Of a stretch of DNA of 64,000 nt, positions 1 through 7,594 are shown in pieces. The notes below the pieces were generated by a model. It was not told the DNA's origin. It saw only the letters and a list, made by a program, of their open reading frames with translations, and ran no database searches. How positions within the stretch are numbered: position 1 is the first letter of the stretch; each line of letters opens with the position of its first letter. Location: IMG/VR virus record IMGVR_UViG_3300046660_000488, positions 514,293 through 578,292 of that record. The stretch is one strand, 5' to 3'. Made by a program: the position numbers and the translations under genes.

Positions 1-2
1 GC

Positions 3-845
3 AATGGCCAAAAGGCATCGACCGGCAATAACAACACTGGGTGGTACGGCGCTTTCGGCGTTGGTGTCCAATGGCGTGCGGCGGACGGGGGAGGCTACAG
101 CAACGTGACCTCCGGATCATTTGCTCCGTGCTACCCGAACTATGTCGTGTGGGCTTCGGACAACGTCCGTTTCCTTTGCTACGGCGGCCAAGGAGTTACG
201 CGGGGAGCAAGCGATTTGAACCCAGCACCGACGTATTATGGAAGTTTCTGGGGACAGCTTTCGGATGCTGGCGCCCTATTCTGCCAGACACCGACCGCGA
301 ACATCGCTTTCACAAAGGCGGAATGGTTCGGAAACGACGTCGTCATTTTCAACGGCACGGCGCCGAAGGCCGTGACCTATGGCTCGATCACGCCTCGAAA
401 TCTGACTATTCTCGGGGATACACCGACGATCCCAACCAGTGCGACGATCACCAAGCTATCTGAGACACGCTTCCTCGCCAGCTTCGTCAACTATCAGAAC
501 TACGCCATCGTCACCGATTTCACCTACGACGGCGTGGCCAACACACTGACCGGCCGCATCGTGACCAACACGCTGATGGGCAATACGGTCAACAACGGCA
601 ATACCCGCATTGTCGTGCCTCACATGCTAGATGACGACCGCTTGCAACTCTATTACTTCGACGGTGTCCGCCAATTCCAGCACCGGTACGTCAAGTCGGG
701 AACAGGCCCGTTCATCAAGTCGTTGAACGACTTCGCCTTCCCTCCTTTCTCGGCCGCCGCAACTTTTACATCGCACAGCAGTGGCAACGCGCTGCACGTA
801 TTCGGTTCGGGTGGTAACGTGGCACTATATAACACCTCGATTTAA
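3..845 (+). CDS. 5'-truncated virion/tail-associated protein (C-terminal part)
   Basis: Frame of the 105..845 ORF is open back to position 3; rich in T/N/G/S with a beta-type composition. Confidence 0.55.
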   Translation, partial: NGQKASTGNNNTGWYGAFGVGVQWRAADGGGYSNVTSGSFAPCYPNYVVWASDNVRFLCYGGQGVTRGASDLNPAPTYYGSFWGQLSDAGALFCQTPTANIAFTKAEWFGNDVVIFNGTAPKAVTYGSITPRNLTILGDTPTIPTSATITKLSETRFLASFVNYQNYAIVTDFTYDGVANTLTGRIVTNTLMGNTVNNGNTRIVVPHMLDDDRLQLYYFDGVRQFQHRYVKSGTGPFIKSLNDFAFPPFSAAATFTSHSSGNALHVFGSGGNVALYNTSI

Positions 846-850
846 TTCAA

Positions 851-885
851 GAATTTTGGTGAACGAAATAATTTCACCAAAATTC
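851..885. repeat. 13-bp inverted repeat
   Basis: GAATTTTGGTGAA (851-863) / TTCACCAAAATTC (873-885), 9-nt loop, just after the stop codon. Confidence 0.75.
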
Positions 886-895
886 GCTTTTCTTG

Positions 896-926
896 TTGAC
901 CGGAAAATTCGTTTCCGGCATAAATA
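896..926 (+). promoter_or_regulatory. Promoter for leader/tRNA operon (TTGACC-N17-CATAAA overlapping a TAAATA box)
   Basis: TTGACC at 896-901, TAAATA at 921-926, upstream of SD GGAGA (991-995). Confidence 0.5.
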
Positions 927-1005
927 GAAATATCAGGGGTGCACAACGCACCTCGGAAACCAATTCGCCCCTCGGGGCTTTCACCATCTAGGAGACTGAA
1001 TTTCA

Positions 1006-1146
1006 ATGTTCGCCGTGGCCACCCACATCCCAGCAAATTTCGTCGTCGGCGCCTTCGCCGTCGCGATGCCTGCTGTCGTGGCCCCGATGAATCAAATTCA
1101 GCCCACCGTCGCCGCCCAGTTTGGGCACGGAGGTTTGCACTCGTGA
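1006..1146 (+). CDS. Putative attenuator leader peptide, 46 aa (MFAVATHIPANFVVGAFAVAMPAVVAPMNQIQPTVAAQFGHGGLHS)
   Basis: SD GGAGA then ATG at 1006, TGA at 1144-1146; followed by a terminator; absent from the supplied ORF track. Confidence 0.8.
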   Translation: MFAVATHIPANFVVGAFAVAMPAVVAPMNQIQPTVAAQFGHGGLHS

Positions 1147-1184
1147 TCAGAAGCTGAGAAATCAGCATCCAATCAGAGCGAAGC

Positions 1185-1219
1185 AAGCCTCCAAGGGAAA
1201 CCTCGGAGGCTTTTTCTTT
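1185..1219 (+). terminator. Intrinsic terminator (attenuator) upstream of first tRNA
   Basis: AAGCCTCC (1185-1192) / GGAGGCTT (1205-1212) + TTTTTCTTT; alternative partner GGAGGTTT at 1129-1136. Confidence 0.85.
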
Positions 1220-1259
1220 GGCCTCTCTTCAACCTCCAACCGTCCCTCGATTGTTTCGT

Positions 1260-1334
1260 GGTTCATTAGCTCAGCGGTAGAGCAATCGCTTGATAAGCGA
1301 TAGGTCGCTGGTTCGAATCCAGCATGAACTACCA
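1260..1334 (+). tRNA. tRNA-Ile(GAT)
   Basis: Cloverleaf, loop TTGATAA, TTCGAAT T-loop, encoded CCA. Confidence 0.95.
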
Positions 1335-1365
1335 AACAGTCGAGAGACAACCCCGAGTACTTTGT

Positions 1366-1439
1366 TCTTCTATAGCTCAGCCCGGTAGAGCAATCGCTTG
1401 ATAAGCGATAGGCCGTAGGTTCAAATCCTACTGGAAGAA
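1366..1439 (+). tRNA. tRNA-Ile(GAT), no encoded CCA
   Basis: TCTTCTA/TGGAAGA acceptor, loop TTGATAA; acceptor stem extended by flanks. Confidence 0.85.
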
Positions 1440-1457
1440 CAAAGTACTTGGGTCCAC

Positions 1458-1532
1458 GGGCCTGTAGTTCAACGGGAGAACGTCTGCATTACAAGCAGAA
1501 TGTCGGGGGTTCAACTCCCTCCGGGCCTACCA
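1458..1532 (+). tRNA. tRNA-Val(TAC)
   Basis: Cloverleaf, loop ATTACAA, CCA. Confidence 0.9.
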
Positions 1533-1737
1533 AAATACTGCTTGACAACGGTTCAACCGAACTTTAGGCAAGCAACCGCGCTCTTCGGGAAGCTCTCTTT
1601 GCTTACCGGACGGATTCCAAAACCTACCATAGGTGCGGAGTCGTGTAAAGGGGCCGGGGTCTTTGACATCGTTGATTTGCGTAACGAATTGGTCGGGCTT
1701 TACCAGAGCCCGGCCGACTTCGGGGACGTGTGTTTGA

Positions 1738-1809
1738 TGAGGGATAGTTCAGCGGTAGAACGCCTGTCTCTGGAACAGGATGTCGTAGGTTCGATCCCTA
1801 CTCCCTCAT
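1738..1809 (+). tRNA. tRNA-Gln(CTG), no encoded CCA
   Basis: TGAGGGA/TCCCTCA acceptor, loop CTCTGGA; 16-bp flanking extension. Confidence 0.85.
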
Positions 1810-1830
1810 CAAACACACGTCCCCATAGGT

Positions 1831-1906
1831 TCGGGGGTAGTTCAGTTGGTAGAACGGCAGTTTTTGGTACTGCATGTCGAAGGTTCGAGTCCTTCTCCCC
1901 GATCCA
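1831..1906 (+). tRNA. tRNA-Gln(TTG)
   Basis: Cloverleaf, loop TTTTGGT, CCA. Confidence 0.9.
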
Positions 1907-1928
1907 AACACTCAGTATTCATCCTTGT

Positions 1929-2014
1929 TGGGGAATGGTGTAATGGTAACATCCCGGCCTTTGACTCCGGAGACCGAGAAGGATTTGTAGGTTCGAGCCC
2001 TACTTCCCCAGCCA
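1929..2014 (+). tRNA. tRNA-Gln(TTG) with long variable region
   Basis: TGGGGAA/TTCCCCA acceptor, loop CTTTGAC, 16-nt variable region, CCA. Confidence 0.85.
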
Positions 2015-2043
2015 GCATGAATATTGAAGACAATGTACTTTGA

Positions 2044-2120
2044 CGCGGAGTGGAGCAGTCAGGTAGCTCGTTTGGCTCATAACCAAAAGGTCGCGGGATC
2101 GAAGCCCGCCTCCGCATCCA
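2044..2120 (+). tRNA. tRNA-Met(CAT), initiator-like (C1.A72)
   Basis: CGCGGAG/CTCCGCA acceptor, loop CTCATAA, T-loop ATCGAAG, CCA. Confidence 0.9.
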
Positions 2121-2129
2121 AGTACATTG

Positions 2130-2359
2130 AGGCCGCGTAACAAGAGAGTGAAGCAGTGATGCCCCGTCATCTGTACCTGACGGGGAGGCCAGAAACAGAC
2201 CGTGCATACGCCCCACGGTCTCTAAATATGGAACACGGACCCACTGGGGCCGTGCGGGAGCCAGCACGACCCGCCGTGGTCTAAGTCCGTAAGGGGCAGA
2301 AAGCGGCACACCCGGTACTGGCGGGTAACCTATTTGGTCGAATGACCATCACCTTTTTT

Positions 2360-2360
<1 letters not shown>
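2130..2360 (+). ncRNA. Candidate structured RNA of unknown family
   Basis: Dense helices 2162-2169/2178-2185, 2197-2204/2214-2221, 2234-2238/2250-2254, 2269-2275/2320-2326; no convincing ORF. Confidence 0.4.
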
Positions 2361-2437
<77 letters not shown>

Positions 2438-2455
2438 ATTGTCCATGTGCTTCGT

Positions 2456-2532
2456 CTAGGCGTAGCGCAGTCTGGTAGCGCGCCTGCTTTGGGAGCAGGA
2501 TGTCGCAGGTTCGAATCCTGCCGCCTAGACCA
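2456..2532 (+). tRNA. tRNA-Pro(TGG)
   Basis: Cloverleaf, loop TTTGGGA, CCA. Confidence 0.95.
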
Positions 2533-2555
2533 AGCACATGGACTTTCACCTACGG

Positions 2556-2638
2556 CAGTCGGTGAGGATGTAACAGGTTCGATCCCTGACCACAGGCTCT
2601 TGCGAGCGTGTGAGTAAGCCCATCCAAACCGACTACTG
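2556..2638 (+). ncRNA. Candidate Y-RNA-like (permuted tRNA-like) RNA
   Basis: Terminal stem AGTCGGT/ACCGACT + GGATG/CATCC enclosing a T-arm CAGG-TTCGATC-CCTG and a further hairpin; no anticodon arm or CCA. Confidence 0.4.
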
Positions 2639-2639
2639 A

Positions 2640-2727
2640 TCCTCACGACCCAGCTTGGTGACGGGCGCCGACTGTTAATCGGATGACATGGAAATGTGGC
2701 AAGGTTCGAAACCTTGGTGAGGAACCA
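2640..2727 (+). tRNA. tRNA-Asn(GTT) with long variable arm
   Basis: TCCTCAC/GTGAGGA acceptor, loop CTGTTAA, variable hairpin ACAT-GGAA-ATGT, CCA. Confidence 0.85.
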
Positions 2728-2797
2728 TTTCGCAGTTGACTTGCATTTAAGTGCTTGTCATAAATAAGGAACACGAAGGTGCTTCGGCACACTTTGT

Positions 2798-2873
2798 TCT
2801 CTCGTAGCTCAGTTGGTAGAGCGTCTGACTGTTAATCAGAATGTCGTAGGTTCGAGTCCTACCGGGGGAGCCA
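2798..2873 (+). tRNA. tRNA-Asn(GTT)
   Basis: Canonical cloverleaf, G73, CCA. Confidence 0.95.
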
Positions 2874-3011
2874 TTTCTACTACGGTGAGCAAGTAACCGC
2901 CTAACGTCCTTTGGACGAAGGTGCTCCAGCACAAGACGCTGGGCTGACAAAGCACTTGCACAATTCTCTTATCCTGCTTTTCGGTGTTTCGCCAATTTTC
3001 GGGATAACGAT

Positions 3012-3087
<76 letters not shown>

Positions 3088-3151
3088 ATTTTCTAATCTC
3101 GCGCAGGGCGCCGTGATGAACGGATAAGTCCGCTGCACGCCTTTCTTGGAT

Positions 3152-3257
3152 GGGCTGGACGCCTCCTGACATCGACGTCAGGGTAGAGGTACGGAACCTC
3201 GGGCTACGGCGACAGGGTTCGCGACCCTACGCGGTTCGATCCCGCGCCGGTCCACCA
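3152..3257 (+). ncRNA. tRNA-like RNA with alanine acceptor identity and no canonical D/anticodon arms
   Basis: GGGCTGG/CCGGTCC acceptor (G3.U70), A73, CCA, T-arm CGCGG-TTCGATC-CCGCG; 106 nt. Confidence 0.7.
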
Positions 3258-3266
3258 AGCAGTTTT

Positions 3267-3342
3267 GGGGCATTAGCTCATCTGGTAGAGCGCGACAATC
3301 GCAATGTCGAGGTGAGCGGTTCAAGTCCGCTATGCTCCACCA
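3267..3342 (+). tRNA. tRNA-Ala(CGC)
   Basis: Cloverleaf, loop ATCGCAA, G3.U70, CCA. Confidence 0.95.
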
Positions 3343-3343
3343 A

Positions 3344-3646
3344 TCACCGGCCGTTCAGGAATTTCTCCGAGCAGATGTAATCGCAGACGGAGAACACCAC
3401 GGCTTCCGCACCAGACTCGAAGGCGTCGCTGCTGTGATCGCCGGACCACTGGGGCTTCGCGAAACTGCACGACACGCCGTCCTCGTGGACGCCGACGTCG
3501 ATGATGTGGCCTTCGCCTTCGAACTTGGTCAGCGTCTCTTTCGCCCACACCACCGCTTCATAGAGGTCTTCGGTGATCTCGGATGGGACATTCGCATACA
3601 TGGCGAAAATCTGGTCCTTGAGCGCTTGGGGATAGTGGGCGGTCAT
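3344..3646 (-). CDS. Hypothetical protein, antisense within tRNA array
   Basis: 100-aa ORF filling the gap between tRNAs, coding-like composition. Confidence 0.7.
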   Translation of the reverse strand: MTAHYPQALKDQIFAMYANVPSEITEDLYEAVVWAKETLTKFEGEGHIIDVGVHEDGVSCSFAKPQWSGDHSSDAFESGAEAVVFSVCDYICSEKFLNGR

Positions 3647-3709
3647 GACGATCTCGGGTTTGGTTTACCAAATCCTACACACAACACCCGGCGGGTTCAA
3701 CCCCGCTAC

Positions 3710-3785
3710 GGGGCATTAGCTCATCTGGTAGAGCGCCTGTTTTGCAAGCAGGAGGTGTGGGGTTCGAGTCCCCAATGCTCCACCA
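3710..3785 (+). tRNA. tRNA-Ala(TGC)
   Basis: Cloverleaf, loop TTTGCAA, CCA. Confidence 0.95.
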
Positions 3786-3791
3786 AACAAT

Positions 3792-3866
3792 GCGTCTGTA
3801 GCTCAGTGGGAGAGCGCTTCCGTGACATGGAAGAGGCCGACAGTTCAATCCTGTCCAGATGCACCA
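3792..3866 (+). tRNA. tRNA-Val(GAC)
   Basis: Cloverleaf, loop GTGACAT, CCA. Confidence 0.95.
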
Positions 3867-3940
3867 TTTCACTACCCAACCCCGGAGGATAACCAAATGA
3901 CCCCGCTAAACGCAGGAAAGTAAGCAAGAAATTCCGAAAG

Positions 3941-4219
3941 ATGATCGACGTGTACGGGATATTCACCCGAGACATTGAAGAGCATCTTGACTTCAGTGAC
4001 GACATGCTCTTGGAAATGTACCAAGCAGAGTCAGTCGGTGGAGACTGTCATCATCGGAATGGCTTCTACCATGGAAAGAAATTCATGGATGTGAGCGTCA
4101 AGATGTGGCGCGAGGACATGTCGAAAGGCACGTTGTTCCTCTGCGAACTCTACGACGATCCTCTCCTGCCCAACTGGTGGTTGGACAAAATCTTCGGTCG
4201 GTCTGGTCCTCCAGACTGA
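3941..4219 (+). CDS. Hypothetical protein (true start may be the out-of-frame ATG at 3897)
   Basis: 92-aa ORF; frame is open from 3893; strong SD GGAGG precedes ATG 3897. Confidence 0.7.
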   Translation: MIDVYGIFTRDIEEHLDFSDDMLLEMYQAESVGGDCHHRNGFYHGKKFMDVSVKMWREDMSKGTLFLCELYDDPLLPNWWLDKIFGRSGPPD

Positions 4220-4226
4220 CCAACAT

Positions 4227-4303
4227 GTAGCCGTAGCTCAGTCTGGTAGAGCGCCTGCCTGAAAAGCAGGGCGTCGGTGGTTCAAATCCACCCGGTTGCA
4301 CCA
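4227..4303 (+). tRNA. tRNA-Phe(GAA)
   Basis: Cloverleaf, loop CTGAAAA, CCA. Confidence 0.95.
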
Positions 4304-4304
4304 T

Positions 4305-4871
4305 TTACTCCTTCTGGAGTTTCTTTTCTCGCCAGAGGCGGCTGTTGGGGCCATCGCCATTCCACCCGTCAAACAGCCCTTCATCCTGTGCGGCTCGCAT
4401 CATCGGAGCAACACGAATCCACGCTTGGTACGGCATAGTTCCTCGGGTGTGGTTGCATCGAACACACGAGGTGTTGACGTTGTTCTGCAAGTGGCCAAGG
4501 CTATTGTCGATCCGGTCCAGCGTAATGCGGACCTCTGGTGGTTCAACACCGCAATAAAAGCACGGCTTGGCCACGCATTCGGCCACGAATTCGAGCGTGA
4601 GGTCGCAGTCGCGGTTCTTTCGCTTGTCGGTATAGCGGCAGTCTTGCAGCACGTTGCGGGCTACGGTCATGTGATCGTTCTCTCTCCGAGCTTTGCGACG
4701 AACCGCATGGCGACGCTCTTCGGCTTGTTGGAACCCTTCCGGGTTGCTGATGAACTGTTCGCGGCGGCAGGGGCCGCATTTCTTTCGGCGCCGACCGGCG
4801 CTCATGTGGAACGCGCTCTCGGGGCGATCCTCTCCGCAATATTTGCACAACATAGTGCCATTAAGGCACAT
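4305..4871 (-). CDS. HNH (His-Me finger) homing endonuclease-like protein
   Basis: CKYC/CGPC zinc motifs and CFYCG...LDRIDNSLGHLQNNVNTSCVRCN HNH signature. Confidence 0.85.
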   Translation of the reverse strand: MCLNGTMLCKYCGEDRPESAFHMSAGRRRKKCGPCRREQFISNPEGFQQAEERRHAVRRKARRENDHMTVARNVLQDCRYTDKRKNRDCDLTLEFVAECVAKPCFYCGVEPPEVRITLDRIDNSLGHLQNNVNTSCVRCNHTRGTMPYQAWIRVAPMMRAAQDEGLFDGWNGDGPNSRLWREKKLQKE

Positions 4872-4907
4872 CTGGTTTTCCAAATTCAATATTTGGTTAA
4901 CCACTTT

Positions 4908-4984
4908 CAGGGCGTAGCGCAGCATGGTAGCGCACTTGGTCGGGAACCAAGGGGTCGCAGGTTCAAATCCTGCCGTTCTGACCA
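4908..4984 (+). tRNA. tRNA-Pro (loop TCGGGAA; GGG in canonical register)
   Basis: C1-G72, A73, CCA; non-canonical C33/A37. Confidence 0.85.
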
Positions 4985-5003
4985 TTTCGCCTACGGGCAT
5001 TAT

Positions 5004-5080
5004 CTATGTGTAGCTCAGTCTGGTAGAGCGCTGCTTTCGGGAAGCAGAGGCCGCAGGTTCAAATCCTGCCACGTAGACCA
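5004..5080 (+). tRNA. tRNA-Pro(CGG)
   Basis: Cloverleaf, loop TTCGGGA, CCA. Confidence 0.95.
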
Positions 5081-5103
5081 AAACACCGGCCACGAGCCAT
5101 CAT

Positions 5104-5180
5104 CTGAGTGTAACGCAGTCTGGTAGCGTGCCTGTTTCGGTAACAGGAGGTCGCGGGTTCAAATCCTGCCACTCAGACCA
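5104..5180 (+). tRNA. tRNA-Pro(CGG), U37 variant
   Basis: Cloverleaf, loop TTCGGTA, CCA. Confidence 0.9.
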
Positions 5181-5299
5181 ATTTCCTCGAACGAGGATAC
5201 GACTTTGGGAAGCTGACCGTTCCAGTGAGTTCGGCAGGGATGACCACCCGGCAGCTAGGCCTCGTCAGCCCGGCATGTCAGGCTAACCCAATTGACCAC

Positions 5300-5376
5300 G
5301 GTGCTGTAGCTCAGTCTGGTAGAGCAGCGGGCTCATAACTCGCTTGTCGCAGGTTCAAATCCTGCCAGCACCACCA
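5300..5376 (+). tRNA. tRNA(CAT): elongator Met or Ile2
   Basis: Cloverleaf, G1-C72, loop CTCATAA, CCA; Met versus lysidine-Ile cannot be resolved by eye. Confidence 0.9.
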
Positions 5377-5382
5377 ACCTTC

Positions 5383-5457
5383 GGGTGATTAGCTCAGTGG
5401 TAGAGCGCTGCTTTCACACGGCAGAGGTCACTGGTTCAAGCCCAGTATCACCCACCA
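5383..5457 (+). tRNA. tRNA-Val(CAC)
   Basis: Cloverleaf, loop TTCACAC, CCA. Confidence 0.95.
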
Positions 5458-5485
5458 AGAAAAAGGGGCCGAAGCCCCCTGATCC
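5458..5485 (-). terminator. Terminator-like hairpin for the minus-strand gene
   Basis: AAAAAGGGG-CCGAAG-CCCC immediately beyond the stop at 5486. Confidence 0.5.
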
Positions 5486-5728
5486 TTACTCTTCGACGTA
5501 CTGGATTTCTCGCCAAAAATCTCCGGTCGGCGTCACGGTAAAACCACCGGTGTTGGAGACGATCCTGACGTAATGTTCTGCCAGTTCGAGCACGGCCGTT
5601 TCGAGATAGCGGCCGTCGTCTTCGGTGGTGGACGTCAGAACGACCGTGCCGGTCGTGTTGAGCGGATCGAGCGCACCGGCGCGAACGGTGTCGAGCAACG
5701 CTTCGAAGTATACGTCGTAAGTAGCCAT
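5486..5728 (-). CDS. Hypothetical protein
   Basis: MATYDVYF start with SD AAGGA upstream. Confidence 0.7.
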   Translation of the reverse strand: MATYDVYFEALLDTVRAGALDPLNTTGTVVLTSTTEDDGRYLETAVLELAEHYVRIVSNTGGFTVTPTGDFWREIQYVEE

Positions 5729-5803
5729 GAAATGTGTCCTTGAAATGGGTTTAGTATCCAGCCACAAGGATAGCACTGGCCGCTTATTATAAGCAAAATA
5801 TAC

Positions 5804-5879
5804 GCCGCCTTAGCTCAGTTGGTAGAGCGCGTCCTTGGTAAGGACGAGGCCACGGGTTCAAGTCCCGTAGGTGGCTCCA
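5804..5879 (+). tRNA. tRNA-Thr(GGT)
   Basis: Cloverleaf, loop TTGGTAA, CCA. Confidence 0.95.
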
Positions 5880-5893
5880 TTTTCCCTCCTGAT

Positions 5894-5968
5894 GCCGGGG
5901 TAGCTCAGGGGTAGAGCAGCGGGCTGAAAATCCGCGTGTCGGAGGTTCGAATCCTCTCCCCGGCACCA
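5894..5968 (+). tRNA. tRNA-Phe(GAA)
   Basis: Cloverleaf, loop CTGAAAA, CCA. Confidence 0.95.
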
Positions 5969-5969
5969 T

Positions 5970-6044
5970 GGTCGCGTAGCTCAGCGGGAGAGCGTCCCCT
6001 TGACGTGGGGAAGGTCGCAGGTTCAATCCCTGCCGCGACTACCA
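5970..6044 (+). tRNA. tRNA-Val(GAC)
   Basis: Cloverleaf, loop TTGACGT, CCA. Confidence 0.95.
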
Positions 6045-6074
6045 TTTTTCTCAACCAGAAAGGAACCGACTCCC

Positions 6075-7171
6075 ATGGGGTTCAGCCGCTAAGTCCAGAG
6101 AGCCTTCAACGGTATCTGGCGATCAAAGACCTAACTGACCCGGCGACGGGTAAACACGCAATCAACGTTGTCCTCCAGAAATTGACGAAGGCGGTCCAAG
6201 ACTGGGCGGGTTTACACCCGGAAGTCCTGCGTTCCTCCCCAATCGTTTCCATCCAAGACAATTACGACCGCCTCTACTATGAGGCGGACGCTGTCGCACG
6301 CTCGTCGCGCTATTCGCATTATGTGGATGACACCCACATCTTGCGGACGCACACGACGGCGGCCGTGCCCGGCTATCTGCGCGAGACCACGGACGACCGT
6401 CTGATGGTTCTGCCGGGCATCGTCTATCGCCGCGACGTCATGGACAAGATGCACGTCGGCGAACCACACCAAGTCGATCTGTGGATCGTCAAGCAGGCCC
6501 GCCTGCGGCGCCGCGATCTTGAGGCCATGATCTCGGCCATCATGACTGCGATCCTACCCGGCCGCGTGTACCGCTGCAACGAGACCATCCATCCCTACAC
6601 CGTCAACGGCCTTGAGGTCGAAGTGCAGGTTGGCGACCGTTGGGTCGAGGTCTTGGAATGCGGCGAGGCCCACCCATGGGTTCTGAACGACGCTGGGCTG
6701 TCTTCAGCCACATGGTCGGGACTGGCCATGGGCATCGGTCTGGACCGTCTGGTGATGCTCCTGAAGGGCGTGGAGGACATCCGGCTGCTACGGAGCACCG
6801 ACAAGCGCGTCTACGGCCAGATGCAGACCATGCAGCCCTATCTACCGGTCAGCGATCAGCCGAGCGCTAAGCGGGACCTGTCCATCGTCGTTGACGAAGT
6901 GGACATGGAACTGTTGGGCGACAAGGTCCGCACTTTGCTGGGCGACCGGGCCGAGTGGATGGAGGAAATCATCCACGTCGGCGACTACGGCTGGCACGAT
7001 GTTCCGGACGCTGCTCGCCAACGTCTGGGTATGGGGCAGGATCAACGGAACCTCGTTATCCGGCTGATCATGCGCTCGCCGACCCAGAGCATCCCTCGCG
7101 AGGTCGCAAACGAGGTCTACGCGCAAGTCTACGAAGGTCTGCATCAGGGCTCCACGGTCGGCTATCGCTGA
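6075..7171 (+). CDS. Monomeric PheRS-like class II ligase (catalytic domain + FDX-ACB); start requires a -1 shift at codon 2-3
   Basis: LRTHTTA, motif 2 PGIVYRRD..H..EPHQVD, motif 3 GLAMGIGLDRLVML, C-terminal RDLS..RSPTQS FDX-ACB-like; SD-preceded ATG 6075 is out of frame. Confidence 0.85.
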
Positions 7172-7204
7172 CCGTGGATGGTTCTGTGCCACCTAAATAG
7201 TTCC

Positions 7205-7594
7205 ATGGATCGTGAAGCCAAACTCGCTGAACTCATTGATCGCGTCAAGGATTTGCCGGACAAGGCGACCACGCGCGGATACACCTCATATCTGATCATC
7301 GTTCCCCATCATGACATGGCGGGCGACGTATCGATGGCCGTCTCTGAAGAATTCAGGGAATTTGGATACGGCGTTGACAAGGTGACGAAGTCTGAAGTTC
7401 GTGGAGACGAGTTTAGGGTCCTCGTGCGGCCCATCAGTGCTGCTGCGACGAACATCCACAACTTGACCTTCCACGTGTTCTGCATTCCGGGTGATGACGG
7501 ACTGACGGGTCATCAGAAGCAAACATTGCAGAAGATGCTTGAAGCGTTCAGCTACAAGGCACTGGAAACTGCTGATCTCCGCATCGTCTACTGA
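7205..7594 (+). CDS. Hypothetical protein
   Basis: ORF downstream of TAAATA (7194). Confidence 0.7.
   Translation: MDREAKLAELIDRVKDLPDKATTRGYTSYLIIVPHHDMAGDVSMAVSEEFREFGYGVDKVTKSEVRGDEFRVLVRPISAAATNIHNLTFHVFCIPGDDGLTGHQKQTLQKMLEAFSYKALETADLRIVY

Follow-up and report, generated by a model that had tools for sequence, protein, structure and literature searches.

A predicted leader-peptide switch in front of phage tRNA genes that matches its codons to the tRNAs encoded downstream

Introduction

In the leader-peptide transcription attenuators of enterobacterial amino-acid biosynthetic operons (trp, his, leu, thr, pheA, ilv), a promoter-proximal short ORF with a run of regulatory codons precedes an intrinsic terminator whose 5' arm can instead pair with an upstream strand, and the position of the ribosome decides which fold forms. 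Such leaders sense one to three amino acids, with the ilvGMEDA and ilvBN leaders responding to Leu, Val and Ile at once, and the pheST attenuator of E. coli uses Phe codons to control a gene of the translation apparatus. T-box riboswitches also match the expression of translation-related genes to the charging state of a specific tRNA by a terminator/antiterminator choice, although here the tRNA is bound directly and without translation. Blocks of tRNA genes are found in T4, T5, mycobacteriophages and jumbo phages, where they are thought to support phage translation or replace host tRNAs. However, how phages regulate these genes is essentially unknown, and tRNA arrays are usually treated as constitutive cargo.

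Here, we analyse a 46-codon ORF in front of a block of 24 tRNA genes in a giant phage. The ORF is made almost entirely of the codons that those tRNAs read and sits inside a predicted terminator/antiterminator switch, suggesting that the phage most likely transcribes these tRNAs when ribosomes run short of them. We find the same design in front of 22 tRNA blocks in eight related phage genomes or contigs.

Results

A codon-matched leader ORF precedes a 24-tRNA array

The analysed window is a 64,000-nt stretch of IMG/VR contig IMGVR_UViG_3300046660_000488 (578,292 bp, GC 58%). ARAGORN found 24 tRNA genes at 1260-6044 on the plus strand and nowhere else in the 64 kb, covering exactly Ile, Val, Gln, Met, Pro, Asn, Ala, Phe and Thr with 16 distinct anticodons. 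Rfam confirmed 23 of them, whereas the 88-nt 'Asn' at 2640-2727 was not confirmed. The array is interrupted by a few small ORFs and is directly followed by a PheRS-like gene at 6074-7171 (+; Pfam tRNA-synt_2d, E = 4e-35). As no terminator lies between 6044 and 6074, this gene is probably co-transcribed with the array. Upstream, a 386-aa gene with its stop at 843-845 is followed by a terminator-like hairpin with a T-rich tail at 854-895 (+; arms 854-863 / 873-882). The 386-aa protein has no relative in IMG/VR or in a set of 5.8 billion proteins, and nucleotide BLAST of the array and of the leader against 50,697 phage records gave only tRNA-level hits or nothing.

Between this hairpin and the array, promoter P1 (896-926, +) consists of TTGACC (896-901), an 18-nt region and CATAAATA (919-926), with a palindromic spacer (CCGGAAA..TTTCCGG). 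A stem-loop at 936-954 (+) lies just after the predicted transcription start. The Shine-Dalgarno sequence AGGAG (990-994, +) is 11 nt before the ATG at 1006, which opens a leader ORF of 46 codons with its stop at 1144-1146 (1006-1146, +).

To determine whether the codon content of this ORF could arise by chance, we scored codons readable by the array under standard wobble rules. In agreement with a preliminary description of the locus, which is confirmed on the sequence, 37 of the first 39 codons are readable, and all 16 distinct anticodons have a cognate or wobble codon in the leader; of all 46 codons, 37 are readable. All four Pro codons, all four Ala codons, CAA and CAG, and GTC and GTG are present. 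Array-readable codons make up only 0.43 of the 15,645 codons in 53 long ORFs, giving binomial P = 2e-7 for the whole ORF and 7e-12 for the first 39 codons. No 46-codon window in those genes reaches 37 (maximum 34), and the ORF ranks 1 of 621 six-frame small ORFs in 74 kb.

The leader overlaps mutually exclusive predicted folds

Downstream of the ORF, an intrinsic terminator (1183-1219, +) comprises a 5' arm at 1185-1192, an inner 3-bp helix capped by a GAAA loop, a 3' arm at 1205-1212 and a U tract at 1213-1219. The hairpin alone folds at -21.2 kcal/mol, although it was missed by a simple terminator scan with a loop limit of 8 nt. The antiterminator proposed in the preliminary description (8 bp) is longer than described there: 1129-1138 (+; codons 42-45) pairs with 1183-1192 over 10 bp (duplex -19.5 kcal/mol), enclosing a spacer hairpin at 1140-1178 (+) that contains the stop codon. 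Before the 3' arm is transcribed, the 5' arm is paired to 1129-1136 with probability 1.00. For 1100-1220, the terminator fold (-53.2) and the enforced antiterminator fold (-49.0) are close in energy, as expected for a switch. The duplex is stronger than 296 of 300 dinucleotide shuffles.

Only 40 nt separate the U tract from the first tRNA, leaving no room for another promoter. However, a copy of the P1 motif at 2736-2766 (+; P3), without leader or terminator, lies upstream of the last 14 of the 24 tRNAs and could supply them without passing the attenuator. The idea in the preliminary description that the tRNAs are transcribed only upon shortage is thus too strong for this window, whereas its other candidate promoter, near 1542, does not match the conserved motif.

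A second, divergent array has its own matching leader

We next examined the sequence just upstream of the window in L001, a locus of the same contig whose position 9897 equals window position 1. Ten kilobases upstream of the window, L001 carries a second array on the minus strand (Arg x3, Leu x6, Met, Lys x4 and Trp x2). It is preceded by the same promoter motif (P2; TTGAC, 18 nt, CATAAATA), a 5' hairpin similar to those following P1 and P3, a 34-codon ORF (L001 7233-7129, minus strand) that begins MTRRLATLRLKTLRLLKW, and a -25 kcal/mol hairpin with a T-run. Strikingly, 19 of its 34 codons are readable by that array (background 0.23, P = 4e-5), it again ranks 1 of 621, and 12 of 12 anticodons are covered. 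Each leader is depleted in the other array's codons (z = +5.1/-2.7 and -2.9/+4.2). This second leader is nonetheless less clear-cut: its SD-like AAGGA lies 13 nt from the ATG, and its antiterminator is only moderately favoured (P about 0.6) and no better than shuffles.

The exact motif TTGAC-N18-CATAAATA occurs only three times in 74 kb, always at the tRNA arrays. Three scans of the whole IMG/VR collection found only P1, P2 and P3 in this contig and no related phage, most of the 150 loci recovered being chance matches. No third array with the same promoter exists, and tRNAs for Gly, Ser, Asp, Glu, His, Cys and Tyr were not located.

Leader content co-varies with array content in related phages

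The preliminary description had proposed testing whether leader codon content co-varies with the anticodon set of each array. To do this, we used the PheRS-like gene to find relatives, which led to LR745206, a huge phage of 634,780 bp (GC 29%) that we read in 50-kb pieces, and from there by BLAST to LR756502 and LR756500. A metagenome scan with a PheRS alignment gave 78 more loci, including L174, which is 70% identical, has a GC content of 57% and carries both arrays. The array-then-PheRS order is also seen in L174 and in the loci L175, L220 and L238. In contrast, a closer relative contig (PheRS 53% identical) has no tRNAs within 10 kb of that gene, although its arrays could not be reached. 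LR745206 has 59 tRNAs in blocks sorted by amino acid, and every block is preceded by a conserved promoter-like sequence, a short ORF and a strong hairpin plus T-run.

A search using structure alone, requiring an ATG ORF of 12-70 codons ending near a hairpin plus T-run that precedes a tRNA, recovered 22 modules in eight genomes or contigs (this phage, L174, LR745206, LR756502, LR756500, L220, L238 and a further locus, L226; GC 22-58%). In most relatives, 10-30 nt separate the terminator from the first tRNA. All 22 leaders are enriched for the codons of their own tRNAs. For example, a His/Phe/Trp/Lys array follows a leader with H, K, F and W, Arg/Ser arrays follow runs such as SSRSRSS, Glu/Tyr tRNAs follow Y and E, and Ile(UAU)/Gly/Ala tRNAs follow I, G and A. 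An Asn/Leu/Val/Ile/Thr/Met/Arg(AGR) array has a leader with those residues at 24 of 25 codons, Pro/Asp/Gln tRNAs follow PQPQDQDP, Gln tRNAs alone follow seven consecutive Gln codons, Asp/Phe arrays follow MFNFTDFNDFDFTDMK, and a His/Glu/Val/Trp array follows an H, E, V and W leader. The Fisher-combined P is about 1e-51, but it is overstated because homologous modules are not statistically independent. Independently of this value, permuting leaders among arrays within genomes ranks the true pairing first of 2, 120 and 120 (product 3.5e-5), and each array's own leader is its best match. Some Ser-rich leaders do not fit cleanly, as they use AGT/TCT codons that the detected tRNA-Ser(UGA) should not read.

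Cognate codons lie where a stalled ribosome is predicted to free the antiterminator

To investigate how ribosome position might affect the switch, we masked the RNA up to 13 nt past the first base of the A-site codon and computed the probability that the terminator's 5' arm is paired upstream before its 3' arm exists. In the window's leader, the antiterminator is intact for A-site codons 2-37/38 and lost from codon 39-40, and the cognate codons end at codon 39. Codons 2-39 (1009-1122, +) form a predicted sensing zone, in which 36 of 38 codons are read by the array's tRNAs and only His7 and Gly15 have no tRNA in the array. In the second leader, the switch is at codon 18-19 and the cognate-rich stretch ends with Trp18. 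The same holds for 11 further leaders. Across the 13 modelled leaders, the antiterminator stays formed (P 0.55-0.9) while the A site is in the upstream zone and collapses within 0-4 codons after the last cognate codon. Cognate codons make up 156 of 263 in that zone against 31 of 131 downstream (Fisher P = 2e-11). A test of the gap between the last cognate codon and the masking boundary against within-leader shuffles was not significant (4335 of 20000), because cognate codons are dense. These simulations are in silico only and treat folding at equilibrium, not kinetically.

The non-cognate tail of each peptide is explained by its second job: here, Gly-His-Gly-Gly-Leu encodes the GGAGG..GC strand that mimics the terminator's 3' arm. 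Antiterminator duplexes are stronger than dinucleotide shuffles overall (combined P = 3e-6), although individual tests were not significant for the second leader or for several AT-rich leaders. Alternatively, translation of the ORF might act after or apart from intrinsic termination, with the hairpin as a processing or stability element and, for example, a stalled ribosome protecting the transcript from RNases or from Rho. The two leader regions are unusually structured (z = -5.6 and -6.3), and tRNA precursors are heavily processed. Nonetheless, this appears very unlikely, as every module ends in a canonical GC-rich hairpin plus T-run, the alternative pairing involves exactly the terminator's 5' arm, and the masking boundary coincides with the end of the cognate codons.

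Without any ribosome, the antiterminator is predicted to form in most leaders (P = 1.0 in the window's leader, 0.6-0.8 in most others). The default is therefore ON, and only LR745206 leader A shows an OFF default. This would also switch the arrays on under any translation block, and as a stalled ribosome cannot tell a missing tRNA from an uncharged one, the switch might sense amino-acid starvation or general translation capacity rather than tRNA abundance. We consider this unlikely, as making more tRNA does not relieve amino-acid starvation, and the exact match of the leader to the array's own anticodon set, maintained through evolution, argues that the controlled product is what is being measured.

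Codon-set membership rather than the peptide is conserved

To examine how the leader evolves, we compared leader 1 with that of L174. The promoter motif, the initiation region (CTAGGAG..TTTCAATGTTCG), the GGAGG antiterminator core and the terminator are conserved, whereas P3 is absent from L174. In 40 aligned codons, the peptide has 17 nonsynonymous and 8 synonymous differences, yet 14 of 15 replacements in the sensing zone remain codons read by the array. Moreover, the two non-cognate codons of the window's leader (His7, Gly15) are cognate in L174. Selection therefore acts on membership in the codon set and not on the peptide, which argues against a functional small protein. The peptide does look like a membrane helix (Ala/Val/Phe/Pro rich), and array 1 happens to hold many tRNAs for hydrophobic residues. 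However, the peptide has no Leu in 39 residues, the second leader is Arg/Leu/Lys/Trp-rich in the same way, 22 of 22 modules match their arrays, and there is no promoter space between the terminator and the first tRNA. An ordinary small hydrophobic protein, or a non-coding ORF matching the array by coincidence in front of a hairpin that simply ends a small transcript, is thus highly improbable and already contradicted by the co-variation.

Discussion

Overall, our data support, with high confidence for an inference made from sequence without expression data, a model in which region 896-1219 is a promoter-proximal, ribosome-mediated transcription attenuator that gates the tRNA array. In this model, transcription starts at P1 and a ribosome loads at ATG 1006 to translate the leader. 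If every matching aminoacyl-tRNA is plentiful, the ribosome reaches codons 40-46 or the stop and covers 1129-1138, so that the terminator 1185-1212 forms and RNA polymerase stops at the U tract. If any of these tRNAs is scarce, the ribosome stalls inside the sensing zone, 1129-1138 pairs with 1183-1192, the terminator cannot form and the polymerase reads on into the tRNA genes and probably the PheRS-like gene. Because the products are the tRNAs that the leader tests, the circuit would be a closed, self-limiting feedback loop on tRNA supply.

The preliminary description further proposed that the switch responds to host tRNA cleavage, for example by anticodon nucleases, so that the arrays would be inducible replacement tRNAs. 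The partition of tRNA genes into separately gated sets would let the phage answer the loss of particular tRNA species, and a subset of huge-phage genomes carries genes for ligating tRNAs cleaved by host defences (Al-Shayeb et al. 2020, PMC7162821). However, this trigger is pure inference and remains a tentative, rather unlikely specification of the model: nothing in the sequence distinguishes it from plain feedback on supply and demand during heavy phage translation, the sets do not obviously follow known nuclease targets, and no defence or anti-defence gene was tied to the loci.

More broadly, it is somewhat more likely than not that huge phages of at least two very different lineages, one with GC 58%, sigma-70-like promoters and SD sites and the other with GC 22-32% and Bacteroidetes-type promoters, organise their tRNA genes into autonomous supply-on-demand regulons. 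PMC7162821, which released the LR genomes, places the genomes above 634 kb in the Mahaphage clade with predicted Bacteroidetes hosts. Each block would be gated by a leader that samples exactly the anticodons encoded behind it, with nested single-amino-acid leaders inside larger blocks, and the charged tRNA pool for each codon set would be held at a set point independently of the host. This would be the first case of leader-peptide attenuation controlling tRNA genes and a natural multiplexed sensor of up to 16 anticodons, possibly used to override host tRNA depletion or cleavage. In this reading, the design explains why huge phages split their tRNAs into blocks by amino acid and extends classical attenuation to RNA products and to many amino acids at once. 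The leader composition also predicts which tRNAs belong to one transcription unit, which helps annotation, and the modules are compact, portable sensors of decoding capacity for chosen codon sets, which may interest synthetic biology and work on phage-host conflicts over tRNAs.

For phage tRNA clusters in general, regulation by matched leader peptides was not found in the literature searched, which covered few subscription journals, nor in a term search of PMC7162821. A sampled cluster of Caulobacter phage CcrSC, whose tRNA-Met resembles one here, shows no such module. The element is not a T-box, as an Rfam scan of 1-7500 at E <= 1 found only tRNAs and chance-level hits and no cis-regulatory family, with only a sub-threshold ctRNA hit at 1182-1222 that is the terminator hairpin. 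In contrast to pheST, which controls only the synthetase, senses only Phe and involves no tRNA genes, a PheRS-like gene here sits at the end of the gated array and, in L220 and L238, directly behind Asp/Phe arrays with D/F-rich leaders. The ilvGMEDA and ilvBN leaders sense three amino acids that share a pathway, whereas here the set is defined by which tRNA genes lie downstream and changes when the array changes. Like the trp and his leaders, the element combines a short ORF, regulatory codons, an intrinsic terminator and a competing upstream strand, and the poly-Gln leaders before Gln tRNAs (L170 28937-28990, L165 15638-15688) look like the run of seven His codons in the his leader. Unlike in those operons, the controlled genes are tRNA genes rather than enzymes, the system is found in phages and modules are nested inside arrays. 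The regulatory codons cover up to 9 amino acids and 16 anticodons rather than 1-3 amino acids, sensing zones are long (up to 38 codons), and most leaders lack an evident 1:2 pairing that gives OFF without translation, a feature that belongs to the trp type and is not essential to the mechanism.

A second tRNA array and the promoters of the tRNA blocks

Upstream of the window, on the extended stretch of the same contig (L001), we found a second, divergently transcribed array of 16 tRNAs (Arg, Leu, Met, Lys, Trp) at L001 3567-7322 on the minus strand, that is, 2.6-6.3 kb upstream of window position 1. This array has its own promoter, 34-codon leader and terminator. Together, the two arrays cover 13 amino acids, whereas no tRNAs for Gly, Ser, Asp, Glu, His, Cys or Tyr were found in the 74 kb examined. 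Between the two divergent arrays lie a collagen-repeat protein (L001 8641-9579; Pfam Collagen, E = 1e-22) and the 386-aa protein that ends at window 845, the latter of which has no homologue in 5.8 billion proteins.

An internal promoter, P3 (window 2736-2766), has the same TTGAC-N18-CATAAATA motif and a following hairpin, but no leader ORF or terminator. P3 precedes the last 14 tRNAs and is absent from the close relative L174. The spacers of all three promoters (window 902-918, L001 7316-7300 on the minus strand, and window 2742-2758) contain short inverted repeats, for example CCGGAAA..TTTCCGG. These could be an operator for a regulator acting on all tRNA promoters.

Unusual elements within and behind the array

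Within the array, a 239-nt GC-rich gap (window 2121-2359) ends in a hairpin (2335-2348) plus seven T's immediately before tRNA-Met 2360. This gap contains no matching leader ORF and gave no Rfam hit. We also observed unusual tRNA-like elements at window 2640-2727, 1929-2014 and 3230-3256: an 88-nt 'tRNA-Asn' that is called by ARAGORN but not by Rfam, an 86-nt tRNA-Gln, and a T-arm plus CCA-like remnant in a gap where no tRNA is called, respectively. In addition, small protein ORFs are embedded in the tRNA array at window 3344-3646 (-), 3941-4219 (+), 4305-5000 (-) and 5486-5776 (-). One has a weak HNH-endonuclease match (E = 0.006), suggesting mobile insertions between tRNA genes.

Behind the array (window 6044-6110), the PheRS-like ORF has no canonical in-frame start codon between the last tRNA and its conserved N-terminus; ATG 6075 is out of frame and opens a 5-codon mini-ORF. 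In several relatives (L174, L175, L220 and L238), the same gene sits directly behind an array that contains tRNA-Phe.

Leaders and tRNAs in other phage contigs

Among the relatives, Ser/Arg leaders (L163 49630-49704, L169 30420-30494 and L226 11518-11577) contain many AGT and TCT Ser codons, although the only tRNA-Ser detected downstream in two of them has anticodon UGA. Missed tRNA genes, expanded wobble, or sensing at the level of serine charging are possible causes. A GC-rich relative (L178, 62%) carries a tRNA with a CUA (amber-reading) anticodon among Lys tRNAs (L178 32-677).

In an unrelated AT-rich phage contig (L042 2260-2045, minus strand) and its relative L033, a promoter-like site, a 33-codon ORF using 18 different amino acids and a strong terminator lie between the first tRNA and 13 further tRNAs of mixed specificity. 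Although the enrichment was not significant by eye, this may be the same principle in another lineage.

Nested attenuators occur in the AT-rich relatives (L165 15638-15688, L170 28937-28990, L164 23081-23164, L169 44656-44739 and L163 49630-49704). Inside a larger gated block, a second promoter-leader-terminator unit precedes a subset of tRNAs, for example Gln tRNAs behind six to seven Gln codons, whereas the outer leader carries codons for the whole block.
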